A DNA stretch of 64,000 nucleotides, taken from Octopus bimaculoides (lineage: Eukaryota). The stretch is from positions 19,014,488 to 19,078,487 of the forward strand of contig NC_069003.1 in the NCBI RefSeq assembly GCF_001194135.2. The letters are read 5' to 3'. The notes under the pieces were generated by a model. That model searched no databases, was not told where the DNA came from, and saw only the letters and a program-made list of their open reading frames with translations. A program made the translations under genes and the position numbers. Numbering within the stretch: the first letter of the stretch is position 1; every line of letters begins with the position of its first letter. Shown here piece after piece: positions 16,501 through 25,500 of the stretch.

Positions 16501-19500
16501 TGAAACAATTGTAGGAATGAATGATTATCAATTTATTAATAAATTATTATTCACCATTAACTCTCCATTTTCTTCTCTTAATTGAATATGGATTATCAAA
16601 CTAAATTTGACGACTGGCACCCATGCCAATGTCTCTTTCACTGAACACTAAACTCGGCTTGCGAAGACCTGTTGGGGCAAGCAAAAGTGAAATCATGCTG
16701 GCACCTGTACCAGTGGAGGACTAAGAGCACCGTCCGAGCGTGATCGTTGCCGGAGCAGCTGTCTGGCTTCGATGGCTTCAATGCTGGTGGCACGTAAATA
16801 GCACCATTTGAGCGTGATCATTACTAACATCGCCTCCCTGGCACTTGTGCCGGTGGCACATGAAAAGACATTCGATCGAGATCATTGCCAGTGCCGCTGG
16901 ACTGGCTCCTGTGCAGGTGGCACATAAAATACACCATTTTGAGCGTGGCCATTGCCAGTACCGCCTGACTGGCCTTCGTGCTGGTGGCACGTAAAAGCAC
17001 CTACTACACTCTCAGAGTGGTTGGCGTTAGGAAGGGCATCCAACTGTAGAAACTCTGCCAAATCAGATTGGAGCCTGGTGTAACCTCCTGGTTCACCAGT
17101 CCTCAGTCAAATCGTCCAACCCATGCTAGCATGGAAAGCGGACGTTAAATGATGATGATGATGTATGTATATATGCAAGTGTGTCTTTCTGTCACCACCA
17201 CCATTTGACAACCGGTGTTGGTGTGCTTAAGTCCCCATAAAATAAGTTTCACGCTTTAAAAGAAGAGTTGGGGTCAATTCATTCAATAAAATGTTTTTCA
17301 AGCTCGTGTTCCAGTATGGCCACAGTCTAATGGCTGAAACAAGTAAAAGATAACATATTACACATTTCCTATAATTCTATGAAGATGTCTGTTTGTTTTG
17401 TTTATACTTTTTTCTATATTTTTTCCCCTTTATATTTTCAGCTGCAAGGATATGCAGCAACACCGAGTTCCAGTGTACCAGCAGCCAATGTATTGAGCTG
17501 CACGATCGGTGTAACGGCGAGTTTGACTGCCTCGATGGCTCTGATGAAATGGGTTGCTTGCCAAATGACTGTAACCCAATGTTACAGTACAGATGCCACA
17601 ATGATTTCTGTATCGACAGGGTATTGTTTTGTGATGGGCATGACGACTGTGGAGATAATTCTGATGAATATAAAGATTGTGGTGAGTAAAAACAACCAAA
17701 TTTATTTTATGTTCATTTGTTTGTTTGATCTCTTTGTCGCCATATTTTTGTAGCTAGGCATACACTGCTTTTGTTTCAAATCATCACCATATATATATTT
17801 ATATGTGTGTGTGTGTGTATACGCACACACACACAATTATGCAGATGAACAAATTAGACACATCAAATATAGTAAATGTATTAGTTTGGGTATGAAGTAC
17901 AAAATATGAATATATGTATACAAGCAAAAGGTGGAGACTTTCAGATGATGAATTTTTAAGTATAAATATATAGATATTTATATTAATAGGTCCAGCTTAC
18001 AGAGTACAAATGACACAGGAAATTAAAGGGATGGAAGAAAGGTGTCATAAATCCAACAGCTGTTTCTGAGAGCTCGGAGATCCATAATAACGTTGGTAGA
18101 TTTAGTTCATCACAATACACAGCCGTATGGATGTAATTAATGTTGGATAAGACGAGCCTCTGTCATCAGCGTAGAGAAGATCTTACATTTCAGATCTTAA
18201 TGCAGAGAAGTTCAAAGATGGAATCTTTAATTTTGTTTGTCGTTTGTACTCTGTGTAAGTTGGACCTTATTGATATAAATATCTATATATTTATACTTAA
18301 AAATTCATCATCCGAAAGTCTCCACTTTTTGCTTTCTCTCGTTTTGCATGTATACATATATACATATTTTGTATTTCATACCCTAACTAATATATCTAAT
18401 ATATTTGATGTATCTAATTTGTTTATCTACATAATTAGCCCTGTACCCACTCAACTTGATCCCTCTTATAGTCTTTATTTACCTTGTGGAATGATCCCCT
18501 ATAAAGATATTGGAGTCTAAGTTTGAATCTTTTGAGCACTAATAAGTGTTTTCTGTACAGAGAATCTTTGGATCTCATCTGTGAACTATATATATATATA
18601 TATATATATATATATATAGCTTCATACTTTAACTAAAGAACTTTCGAAAAAAGATGGAATTCTTGTTCATGCAGATAAAACTACTCCATGTACCAATCAC
18701 TTCTAAAGAAAGAGATTATAAAAAACTTTAAAGTCACAAATTCCAATAACCTGAAACAACTAAACCTCCAAGCAAAAGAAATTATGCAAAATATATTTTA
18801 GAACAATGTGAATACCCGTCAGAGTGTAAGTATCTTGAGAGAAAAGCTGAACATTAGAAGCATCAGTTGTGGCGTGCAAGAGAGACGATTGCGCNNNNNN
18901 NNNNNNNNNNNNNNNNNNNNNNNNNNNNNNNNNNNNNNNNNNNNNNNNNNNNNNNNNNNNNNNNNNNNNNNNNACACCATTTCGAGCGTGGCCGTTTTCG
19001 TGCGGGTGACACGTAAAAGCACCCACTACACTCTCTGAGTGGTTGGCGTTAGGAAGGGCATCCAGCTGTAGAAACTCTGCCAAATCAGACTGGAGCCTGG
19101 TGTTGCCATCCGGTTTCACCAGTCCTCAGTCAAATCGTCCAACCCATGCTAGCATGGAAAGCGGACGTTAAACGATGATGATGATGATGATGATGATGAA
19201 AACTGAACCTTATGAACCTAAAACACCTAGAATTAACATTAAGGACCACAAACCTAACTTGGATACTAAACCAACTGTAAGACTTATATGTCCCTCCAAA
19301 TCAGACCTAGGTAAAATTAGTAAGTATATAAACAAACAAAATATTACTAGGATATTAAAATCATATGTAAAACTTAATAAAACAACAAGAGTAGCAAATT
19401 TTAATAGGGAAAGTGCTTCAATAAACTATAATACAAATCTGAACAAAAAGTAAGTTTATAAGAAAGTATATAACGAAGTTACAACTTCTGGAACTGATTA

Positions 19501-22500: not shown

Positions 22501-25500
22501 AATATGAGGATGTTAGTTTTCAAGCGATATGCCATCATTGTAGCCCAACTGCCCTTCAGTGATATATAAAAGTTTTAAAAAATACTTCTTTCTCATAATA
22601 TTTAATTTCTTTTGGCTTTTTTTATATTTCCAGCTTCCAGTGTCTGCACAGTGACAGAGTTTCAATGTTCAAACAATCAGTGTATTGATCTCCAGGATCG
22701 GTGTAATGGTGATTTTGACTGCCTTGATGGCACCGATGAAATGTCCTGCTATGCTGACAACATGTGTGACCCTGTGTTACACTTCACCTGCAACAACAAC
22801 GTCTGCATTGATCGTGTCTTGTTCTGCGATGGACGGAATGACTGTGGAGATAATTCTGATGAACTTGAAAATTGTGGTTAGTGAAATAAATTGTAACGAA
22901 ACCTTTGTGTGTGTATGTGTGTGTGTGTGTGTGTGTGTGTCTGCACCTATATGTGGATGTGTGTGTCTGAGTTTAAAAATTTATAAGTTCTTGATAGAGT
23001 CAAATGGTTTGGAAAAATTTTATGTATTAAAAATTATTTTAAAACAAAATTTGATAAACACCTGAACAGTATTTTTTTGCAAAGATTTATGTGTGGGTGT
23101 ATACATATGTATTTATATATGTATGTACGTATATATGTATGCACATATATATGTATGTATATATGTGTGTATGTATATATGTATGTACAATAAATATTAA
23201 ATGAATTTATATAAAAATATTTATTTTACCAATAAATAAAAGAAAATAAACATTTAACAATATTACTGAAAATAAATGCAATACTTACCTTATTGAAGCT
23301 TTAGTTTATATATACATTCATTTTATTATTATTATTATTATTATTATTGTATTTTGACCTGAAGATTAGCTATATTTTTGAATAGAATTGATTTTTGATC
23401 AATTTATTTTGAATCGATTTGGTTTTTATTTTATTTTCTATTTGAAAATGTGGTTATGAAACACGTGTAGTTGTTTTATTATTTTAATATTTATTACTTT
23501 GTATTTTTATTATAAGTCTTTTTAGTGTATTTACTTATTAAATTTTTCTGACTTATGATGAAGTTAATGTTGAAATGGCTAAGAAATCAATACAAGTATT
23601 GAATCTTTCTATGAGTAAATGTTCCATAAATACTTGTGAACTTACTTTAAAATAATAACCTTCATTTAATATCTATTTGTCTTTTGAAGGTGTGAATCCG
23701 TGTGACCTACACAACCCATGTGAACATGACTGCATTCCAGTCTATTATGAGTACAGGTGTTCTTGTCGTGAAGGATACAAATTGTATAATAAGACTTTCT
23801 GTCGAGGTAATTCTGTAAATTCTTTGAATTGTTTCATTCTGTAGTATTGTTGTTTCATAATATTTATGTTGCACGTGTTGTGTATGATATTGTCATGTGA
23901 CCTAATCTGATGGTCACATGATGAGGACTATCTAATGGGATTGACCTTTCTGTTACATGTAGTTTCTTCTTTTTCAAAATATCTTGGGTGCAACTGCAGT
24001 TTTACTTGATTATTTAGGTGGTTAAGACTAGTGAAAGTAAGGAGTTGCTTACTCCAATAGACACTTTGTCAGGGTTTATGTAGTAAACCTCTGGTAAGGA
24101 GTGTGTTTGCTTCCTAGTCACATGGTTTCAGGTTCAGTCCAACTTGGGCCCCCGGCTGACCAAAGCCTTATGAAGGGATTTGATAGAAGGAAGTAGAAGG
24201 AGCCTGTCATGTATGTCTCCTTGTTTTGATATCATGTGATTGTTATCAATGAATATCATTCATTTTCATCTGATCATAGAAAGCTGGCAGAATTAACAGC
24301 ACATTGGGCTAAATGCTTAGCGGCACTTCATTTGTTTACGTTCTGAGTTCAAATTCCACTGAGGTCAACTTTACCATTCATCCTTACGGGTTTGATAAAA
24401 TAAGTACCAGTTAAGGACTGGGGTCGATGTAATAGACTCACCCCATTCCCTGAACTTGCTGGCCTTGTGCCAAAATTTAAAACCATTACTACTACTACAA
24501 CAACAACTACTACTACTACTACTCTGCTTAGATAGCAAGCTGGCAGAATCAGTAGCATACTAGGCAAAATGCTTAGCAGCAATTTGTCTGTCTTTACATT
24601 TTGAGTTCAAATTCCACTGAGGCCAACTTTGCCTTCTTTTCTTTTGGGGTCAGTAAAATAAGCATCAGTCAAGTACTTGGGTTGATATAATCAACTTAAT
24701 CCCCTCCCCCGAAATTGCTGGCCTTGTGCCAAACTTTGAAAGCATTATTATTATTATTATTATTATTATTATTATTATTATTATTATTATTATTATTACT
24801 ACTACTACTACTACTACTACTACTACTACTACTACTTAGGTGGTAAGCTGGCAGAATCGTTAGCATGCTAGACGAAACGCTTAGTGGCATTGCATATGTC
24901 TTTATACAATGTGAGTTCAAATTTTGCTAAGGTCAACTCTGCTTTTCATTCCTTTCAGGGTCAATAAAATAAAGTACCAGTTGAGCACTGGGGTCAATGT
25001 AATCAACCATCCTCTTTCATTCAAATTTCGGAGCTGGTGCCTAGAATAGAATGGACTATCATTATTATTAAAGTGGCAAACTGGTAGAATTGTTAGCATG
25101 CAGGACAAAATGTTTAGCAGTGTTTCTTTCAGTTTTACATTGTGAATTCAAAATTCTGCTGATGTTGACTTCACCTTTTATCCTTTCATGGTAGATAAAA
25201 TAAATACCAGTTGAGCTCTAGGGTTGATTATATTGACATACCTCTTCCCCCAAAATAGGAAGGGTTATTGTTGTTGTCAAATTGTTGACTGATTTATTTT
25301 ATTCCCTATTCCAATATTTGTTGTTATTGTTGGAATTTCAGATATTAATGAATGCGTGACCAGTTTTCCTTGTTCTCACAAGTGTGAAAACACAATCGGA
25401 GGTTACACCTGCTCCTGTGCTGAGGGTTACCGCCTGGAAAAAGACGGAAAATTCTGCAAAGTGGCTGAACGTAAGTTTAATCCAGCTTTTTTTTTTGTTT

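Follow-up and report, generated by a model that had tools for sequence, protein, structure and literature searches.

The sequence analyzed here is a 64-kb stretch of Octopus bimaculoides NC_069003.1 (hereafter the window; all coordinates are positions within it). It contains one large LDLR-family gene on the + strand, with about 35 exons within the window. The parts of this gene are, in order, the end of a YWTD propeller with an EGF module (5559–5873), eight LDLa repeats (6044–22876), two EGF modules (23690–23806 and 25342–25470), one propeller, one EGF module, 11 LDLa repeats (32551–49754), two EGF modules, and a further propeller. The eight-repeat block corresponds to the ligand-binding cluster III and the 11-repeat block to cluster IV of LRP1-type receptors. 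Two adjacent exons at the end of cluster III, exons 8 and 9, each encode two LDLa repeats and are tandem duplicates of each other. The origin, age, and use of these two copies are the subject of this analysis.

The same domain order is present in LRP1-type proteins of molluscs, arthropods, and vertebrates. As in LRP1/LRP1B (CD91), cluster III is followed by two EGF modules, a YWTD propeller, an EGF module, an 11-repeat cluster IV, two EGF modules, and a propeller. The segment order from cluster III to cluster IV is common to LRP1 and LRP2, and order alone cannot separate them. Among solved structures, the best and colinear match of the product of exons 7–11 is the end of cluster III plus two EGF modules of LRP2 (155–164 bits). 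When 1.84 billion representative proteins were searched with a profile of both exon translations, one close relative emerged, Argonauta hians GAB1610066.1 (P0104), which is labelled LRP1B-like by its source. The window is colinear with this protein exon by exon across amino acids 57–1821, with 60–88% identity per exon. The full-length top matches of GAB1610066.1 are in turn LRP1-type proteins (39% identity to Lottia and 35% to mosquito LRP1), and vertebrate LRP1 ranks above LRP2. The Argonauta ortholog also has the membrane-proximal EGF array, the transmembrane helix, and a tail of the NPxY type (NPLY); the corresponding region of the Octopus gene falls outside the window. The window gene is an LRP1-type receptor with the duplicated exons in cluster III, and the placement proposed in the initial annotation is upheld by this colinearity and by the LRP1-type best relatives.

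The Argonauta annotation splits this receptor in two (L001 1–351 versus 2001–72550), with an upstream 538-amino acid call that ends just before a 2349-amino acid model. The 538-amino acid product has LRP1-like propeller and EGF matches, and the longer model starts inside a propeller. The deposited Argonauta protein is thus an N-terminally truncated model.

The features from the start of cluster III to the second EGF exon behind it are as follows.

5559–5873, + strand: propeller end and EGF just before cluster III (coding-match coordinates, from tblastn with amino acids 193–297 of the Argonauta protein P0104, 83% identity)
6044–6160, + strand: cluster III repeat 1 of 8 (w1), one LDLa (coding-match coordinates; canonical counterpart ambiguous)
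7884–8000, + strand: cluster III repeat 2 of 8 (w2), one LDLa (best profile match canonical repeat 5)
10162–10272, + strand: cluster III repeat 3 of 8 (w3), one LDLa (best profile match canonical repeat 6, 12 bits above the next)
13568–13696, + strand: exon 7, cluster III repeat 4 of 8 (w4), one LDLa, phase 1-1 (canonical repeat 7; 39 amino acids, ...EEAGC tail)
17442–17681, + strand: exon 8, copy 1, two LDLa (A, 17453–17557; B, 17570–17680), 240 nucleotides (nt), phase 1-1 (ortholog at Argonauta L001 ~14141–14383)
17682–22633, + strand: intron between the copies, nominally 4952 nt (three gaps, SINE-like copies, and a foldback element)
22634–22876, + strand: exon 9, copy 2, two LDLa (A, 22645–22749; B, 22765–22875), 243 nt, phase 1-1 (ortholog at Argonauta L001 ~15582–15825)
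23690–23806, + strand: exon 10, first EGF after cluster III, phase 1-1
25342–25470, + strand: exon 11, calcium-binding-type EGF (DINEC...) preceding the YWTD propeller, EGF, and 11-repeat cluster IV (32551–49754)

Exons 8 and 9 had initially been annotated as phase 1-1 exons of 240 and 243 nt with two LDLa repeats each, about 60% identity in protein (49/81 by hand), similar acceptor contexts, and in-frame inclusion of neither, either, or both; all of these points were borne out. Each exon opens with two bases (CT) that complete a codon and closes with a single G that begins the next. The splice contexts (slash at the exon boundary) are ...tatattttcag/CT and TG/gtgagt for exon 8, and ...tatatttccag/CT and TG/gttagt for exon 9. 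The joins 7-8, 7-9, 8-9, 8-10, and 9-10 keep the frame, as does every combination of joins. LDLa repeats are about 40 residues long, with six cysteines at canonical spacing and an acidic calcium cage (D-x-S-D-E) toward the C-terminus. Both translations are free of stops and contain two LDLa modules with 12 cysteines and SDE/TDE motifs; Pfam PF00057 is matched twice per exon (69.6 and 72.2 bits for the whole sequences, against a cut-off of 24.1).

The two proteins are identical at 50 of 80 columns (63%), and the DNA is 74% identical over 269 nt (17429–17691 versus 22621–22886). This DNA similarity ends about 10–13 nt beyond the exons, such that the introns are unrelated apart from splice-site consensus. 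The 19 LDLa modules of the window give 171 pairs, with a mean identity of 41% (standard deviation 6). The highest identity is that between the first modules (e8A-e9A, 71%), followed by that between the second modules (e8B-e9B, 65%). In 40 other LRP1/LRP2 proteins, neighboring two-module units of cluster III are on average 41% identical (standard deviation 4.4, maximum 52%, n = 280). By the same measure, the pair in the window reaches 65% and the corresponding pair in Argonauta 60%. The similarity of exons 8 and 9 exceeds chance, and the two exons, which are homologous over their full length, in the same phase, and the closest of their module type, are a true tandem exon duplicate.

Comparison within cephalopods was made with A. 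hians (locus L001, 74.5 kb, no N), and the initial annotation had proposed a check of other cephalopods for the pair. The Argonauta gene has two two-LDLa exons (~14141–14383 and ~15582–15825) in the same order and between the same neighbors, about 1.2 kb apart. The exon order and strand in the window are confirmed by this gap-free locus, which is arranged alike.

This arrangement bears on the quality of the Octopus assembly around the pair. Exon 8 is the sole exon of a 3.2-kb contig (15690–18894) that lies between the gaps 15594–15689 and 18895–18973, and the placement of exon 8 is supported solely by colinearity with the Argonauta locus. The gaps 18895–18973, 20257–20574, and 22426–22459 all lie within the intron between exons 8 and 9 and interrupt no exon. 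The one nearest to exon 9 is 175 nt upstream of the acceptor, inside a (TA)n run. With 431 nt of N, the nominal length of this intron is an estimate only. Such flanking gaps, including the one just before exon 9, might suggest that the two copies are alleles or come from a mis-scaffolded contig. However, the copies differ at 26% of their nucleotides and are saturated at synonymous sites, which is far above allelic divergence, and the gap-free Argonauta locus has the same order and the same copy-specific signatures. Haplotype or assembly duplication was rejected on these grounds, and an assembly artefact is scarcely credible.

The introns around the pair contain several repetitive elements. The window contains at least 14 copies, oriented either way, of a SINE-like (short interspersed element-like) sequence that is about 190 nt long and has a (GAT)n tail; among them are those at 9676–9822, 14809–14958, 16975–17167, 18997–19189, and 44772–44919. 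The copies at 16975–17167 and 18997–19189 (93–94% identical) flank exon 8 in direct orientation, with an older inverted copy upstream. The element also matches an Argonauta intron (L001 ~15838–15993). In addition, two foldback (palindromic) elements are present. One is in intron 7 (16207–16596; 166-nt arms, 97% complementary) and the other in intron 8 (17835–18436; arms of about 154 nt), where it begins about 150 nt past the exon 8 donor. Neither of them recurs elsewhere in the window. A search of the introns of the window and Argonauta for a third copy of the exon or a relic of repeat 8 found none.

The two species have the same copy-specific features: the signature CNP..(F/Y)RCHN marks copy 1 in both, and CDP..HFTC.N.VCI, together with a longer linker between modules A and B, marks copy 2. 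Nonsynonymous divergence (dN) between the species is 0.25 and 0.31 for the same copy, compared to 0.41 and 0.33 across copies. Within species, dN between the copies is 0.23 in the window and 0.36 in Argonauta. Based on the shared signatures and the higher cross-copy dN, the duplication is older than the split of the window species and Argonauta. In neighbor-joining, the B halves group by copy (e8B with Argonauta c1B, 71% bootstrap), and the four A modules form one clade (78%).

Both copies have been maintained by purifying selection, as initially annotated. Between the copies in the window, the proportion of synonymous differences (pS) is 0.71 (saturated) and dN is 0.23, corresponding to a dN/dS of about 0.10. 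All 12 cysteines and the acidic motifs are retained in all four copies of the two species. Between species, synonymous sites are saturated in every exon of the gene (overall pS 0.88, range 0.64–1.2). The nonsynonymous proportion (pN) of the cassettes is about 0.21–0.25 compared to a gene average of 0.15, which is somewhat faster but within the range of the other repeats.

The GC content at third codon positions (GC3) is 0.41 in the window and 0.68 in Argonauta, and apparent synonymous differences are more numerous than would be expected at random (pS up to 1.2). The two lineages differ strongly in codon or base composition. Given this difference and the saturation, synonymous sites provide neither dates nor any sign of splicing constraint. 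A second two-LDLa exon of the window gene is located in cluster IV (39593–39829; repeats 4 and 5 of 11). With 82% overall identity to its Argonauta counterpart and a first module that is the same in protein, this exon is far better conserved than the duplicated cluster III cassettes (62–66%).

All non-cephalopod relatives with a fully countable cluster III have 10 repeats there; among these are Lottia, oysters, Potamilus, Tegillarca, Plakobranchus, Lingula, the coral Montipora, and vertebrate LRP1/LRP2. With eight repeats, cluster III of the window gene and of Argonauta departs from the 10 that typify LRP1. This number is a derived state of the ortholog and no ground against orthology. The start of the cluster is complete in LDLa exons, since repeat 1 (at 6044) follows the EGF exon (5559–5873) after about 170 nt. 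Compared to LRP1/LRP1B, the cephalopod gene also differs in having the terminal two-repeat exon twice and no counterpart of repeat 8.

No neighboring two-repeat unit of cluster III exceeds 52% identity in the 40 LRP1/LRP2 proteins, and no similar neighboring pair was seen in gastropod, bivalve, brachiopod, cnidarian, or vertebrate relatives. The duplication is cephalopod-specific, or at any rate restricted to the branch that gave rise to the window species and Argonauta. These results agree with the initial annotation in that the duplicate is lineage-specific, being present in Argonauta and absent from the other groups, and in that vertebrate LRP1, with its canonical 10 repeats, has no such pair. 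An ancient pair shared across protostomes is contradicted by the gastropod, bivalve, and brachiopod relatives, which do not have it. The suggestion that the duplicate is a way to vary the length of cluster III fared less well, as eight repeats compared to the canonical 10 are no lengthening past the norm.

For the origin of the pair, repeat positions were assigned with position-specific profiles built from LRP1-type orthologs, as percent identity of single modules is too noisy. Exon 7 matches canonical repeat 7 (by 8 bits), with which it shares the 39-amino acid length and the ...AGC tail, and the two preceding exons are closest to repeats 6 and 5. Beyond repeat 7, three modules remain in the canonical gene and four in the cephalopod gene. 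In the LRP1-type gene of Lottia, a separate exon encodes repeat 8. A single phase 1-1 exon of about 250 nt encodes both repeat 9 and repeat 10; it closes with ...NC G/gtaagt and immediately precedes the EGF exon. As in the cephalopods, a two-repeat phase 1-1 exon therefore closes cluster III. In the usual human numbering, repeats 9 and 10 of the cluster are CR19–CR20. The profile of the mollusc repeat 9-10 pair is the top scorer for all four cephalopod cassettes (67–74 bits versus 60–63 for the runner-up). Of the four B modules, all but Argonauta c1B have repeat 10 as their best profile, and c1B scores slightly higher against repeat 8. That the exon of repeats 9 and 10 would be the ancestral source of both copies is moderately supported by these profile scores. 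The cephalopod cluster III has nothing that corresponds to repeat 8 or to about three N-terminal repeats, from which we infer a loss of the repeat 8 exon.

How the two copies are spliced is a separate question. LDLa and EGF modules of extracellular mosaic proteins are, by Patthy's rule, encoded by class 1-1 exons bounded by phase-1 introns, and in-frame compatibility is the rule for such modules. All five neighboring LDLa and EGF exons checked here are phase 1-1. The in-frame compatibility of exons 8 and 9 therefore carries no information on their splicing. Tandem exon duplication in proteins made of repeated modules normally simply extends the array. The present case does not differ in any essential way from such duplication of class 1-1 exons, in which tandem copying of a whole exon gives a longer in-frame array, except that the duplicated unit is a two-module exon.

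The splice sites of both introns are of the GT-AG, U2 type. The acceptors of exons 8 and 9 are polypyrimidine-rich and strong, and the donor of exon 8 is consensus. The exon 9 donor (gttagt) is slightly off-consensus in the window; it is gtgagt in Argonauta and is thus not conserved. Apart from SINE-like repeats, no conserved intron element was found near the exons in the comparison of the window with Argonauta, a comparison of two species with saturated neutral sites in which short elements could be missed. No synonymous-site constraint was seen in the cassettes, where pS is saturated as in the other exons of the gene. Regulated cassette exons tend to have weak sites, conserved flanks, and low synonymous divergence, which are tendencies rather than strict criteria; the two copies do not exhibit them. 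Alternative splicing of the copies may occur, with a low prior, and no sequence feature was found in its support.

One form of such splicing would be the skipping of one or both copies in some tissues or stages, giving six or eight repeats in cluster III and altered ligand binding. ApoER2/LRP8, VLDLR, and the insect lipophorin receptors are known from transcripts to skip exons of ligand-binding repeats, and like them the window gene has phase 1-1 LDLa exons that can be dropped in frame, with an altered ligand repertoire as the outcome. Unlike the skipped exons of those small receptors, the exons in the window are known from sequence alone and do not have the conserved flanking introns often seen in regulated cassettes. 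Skipping would be in frame because both exons are symmetric, but so are all five neighboring exons checked, such that exons 8 and 9 are not singled out. The slightly off-consensus donor of exon 9 might favor skipping, but the weakness is not shared by Argonauta, and the acceptors and the exon 8 donor are strong or consensus. Flanking introns are not conserved and synonymous sites are saturated, which is often the opposite in conserved regulated cassettes. Oppositely oriented SINE-like copies on either side of exon 8 (14809–14958 versus 18997–19189) could also be invoked; an element with 14 or more copies in the window should form such pairs around an exon by chance. Taken together, cassette-type use of the copies is unlikely.

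Strict mutual exclusion, with exactly one copy per mRNA as in Dscam or ion-channel genes, would be a second form. Tandem exon duplications have given rise to mutually exclusive exons in the Dscam1 clusters and in tandem-duplicated exon substitutions in human genes (PMC9013439, PMC5740500, PMC9741552). The pair examined here resembles these systems in that the exons are adjacent, homologous, near-equal in length, in the same phase, and under purifying selection in both copies. Together with similar acceptors, adjacency, homology, length, and phase are the usual criteria for candidates (PMC5740500), but many adjacent exons that are alike are not mutually exclusive (PMC5740500). The difference is that no mechanism that would enforce exclusivity fits here, that joint inclusion is in frame, and that the gene model includes both exons. 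Steric exclusion is impossible with an intron of about 4.9 kb here and about 1.2 kb in Argonauta, as the initial annotation had noted for the Octopus intron. Ordinary GT-AG sites of the U2 type leave no U2/U12 incompatibility. With lengths of 240 and 243 nt, both divisible by three, inclusion of both or neither is in frame, and nonsense-mediated decay cannot police the choice. In the comparison with Argonauta, which could miss short elements, no docking or selector candidate in the introns was found to be conserved, and the inverted repeats in the region are transposon copies or runs of (TA)n or N. The predicted Argonauta model also contains both exons. Strict mutual exclusion is therefore highly improbable.

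Taken together, we regard as probable an old tandem duplication of the repeat 9-10 exon in the cephalopod lineage, with both copies kept and most likely spliced constitutively. A single pre-existing exon, encoding the last two LDLa repeats of cluster III (9 and 10), would have been duplicated in tandem after the separation from gastropods and bivalves and at least by the common ancestor with Argonauta. The duplication probably accompanied a remodelling of the otherwise deeply conserved cluster III from 10 to eight repeats, through the loss of the repeat 8 exon and about three N-terminal repeats and the doubling of the repeat 9-10 exon. Purifying selection has since kept both copies as intact calcium-binding LDLa modules. 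Spliced in series (7-8-9-10), they would give a mature receptor with an A-B-A'-B' arrangement at the end of cluster III. Constitutive use is favored by the polypyrimidine-rich acceptors, the GTGAGT/GTTAGT donors, the joining of both exons in the Argonauta model, and the lack of intron conservation and of synonymous-site constraint.

Several observations weigh against parts of this account. On the age of the duplication, the four-point sums of dN are 0.56 for orthology of the copies, 0.59 for grouping by species, and 0.74 for the crossed pairing, the first two being nearly tied. The A halves group by species in neighbor-joining (61% and 56% bootstrap). For a spread across cephalopods, Argonauta is the single other cephalopod compared. 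On the origin from repeats 9 and 10, a plain BLAST comparison of the cassettes with every collected protein singled out no repeat position outside cephalopods, the B modules lie weakly near repeat 8 rather than repeat 10 in the neighbor-joining tree, and the assignment is based on profile margins of 4–16 bits and on position. On splicing, searches of protein collections for isoforms brought up no cephalopod protein besides that of Argonauta, the Argonauta gene model that joins both exons is the only one at hand and is a predicted model, and constitutive inclusion is considered most likely on prior grounds.

The conflict between the A and B halves may be explained in several ways. The mosaic signal may reflect partial gene conversion that affected the 5' halves once the species had separated, a duplication not long before that separation, or noise in units of 35 residues. 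Given the short internal branch together with this mosaic, either partial gene conversion or a duplication only shortly before the split would apply.

Some of the same points are relevant to the possibility that no lineage-specific duplication occurred, such that exons 8 and 9 descend by position from repeats 7-8 or 8-9 and from repeats 9-10 and became similar by gene conversion or convergence. In colinear BLAST alignments, exon 7, 8A, 8B, 9A, and 9B pair with five successive repeats in Lottia, LRP1, and LRP2. The weak position of the B modules in the tree and the score of the Argonauta c1B module point in the same direction, and the grouping of the A halves by species makes some homogenization plausible. 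However, exon 7 matches repeat 7 and not repeat 6, which leaves three canonical positions for four modules. Furthermore, Lottia has a single-repeat exon for repeat 8 and a shared exon for repeats 9 and 10, whereas the cephalopod gene has two two-repeat exons and no single-repeat exon past repeat 7. The repeat 9-10 pair profile is also the best match for each of the four cassettes, and the similarity between exons 8 and 9 is colinear through both modules and the exon ends. Descent by position without duplication is very unlikely, and duplication of the repeat 9-10 exon is the preferred explanation.

A further possibility is that the doubled repeat 9-10 exon acts as a switch, with tissues including copy 1, copy 2, or both, such that cluster III would end in different two-repeat units that evolve separately, and that partial gene conversion keeps the A halves alike while the B halves diverge. 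We consider it quite doubtful. If true, a giant endocytic receptor whose architecture has otherwise stayed fixed from cnidarians to vertebrates would have gained a lineage-specific means of diversifying its ligand binding. More generally, differential use of the two copies, if true, would provide unusual isoform diversity in the ligand-binding region of LRP1. The pair also calls for caution in annotation, as the exons are alike enough for gene predictors or pipelines that look for mutually exclusive exons to call them alternatives.

A tandem duplication of this kind is an ordinary event for a modular extracellular protein, and the departure from the conserved 10-repeat layout is modestly interesting. 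The 2-8-10-11 repeat layout of LRP1-type receptors is conserved among the sampled animals, from coral to mammals, and the two cephalopods break it in cluster III. The gene thus provides a clean and datable example of a ligand-binding array that would have been remodelled through the loss and duplication of whole exons.

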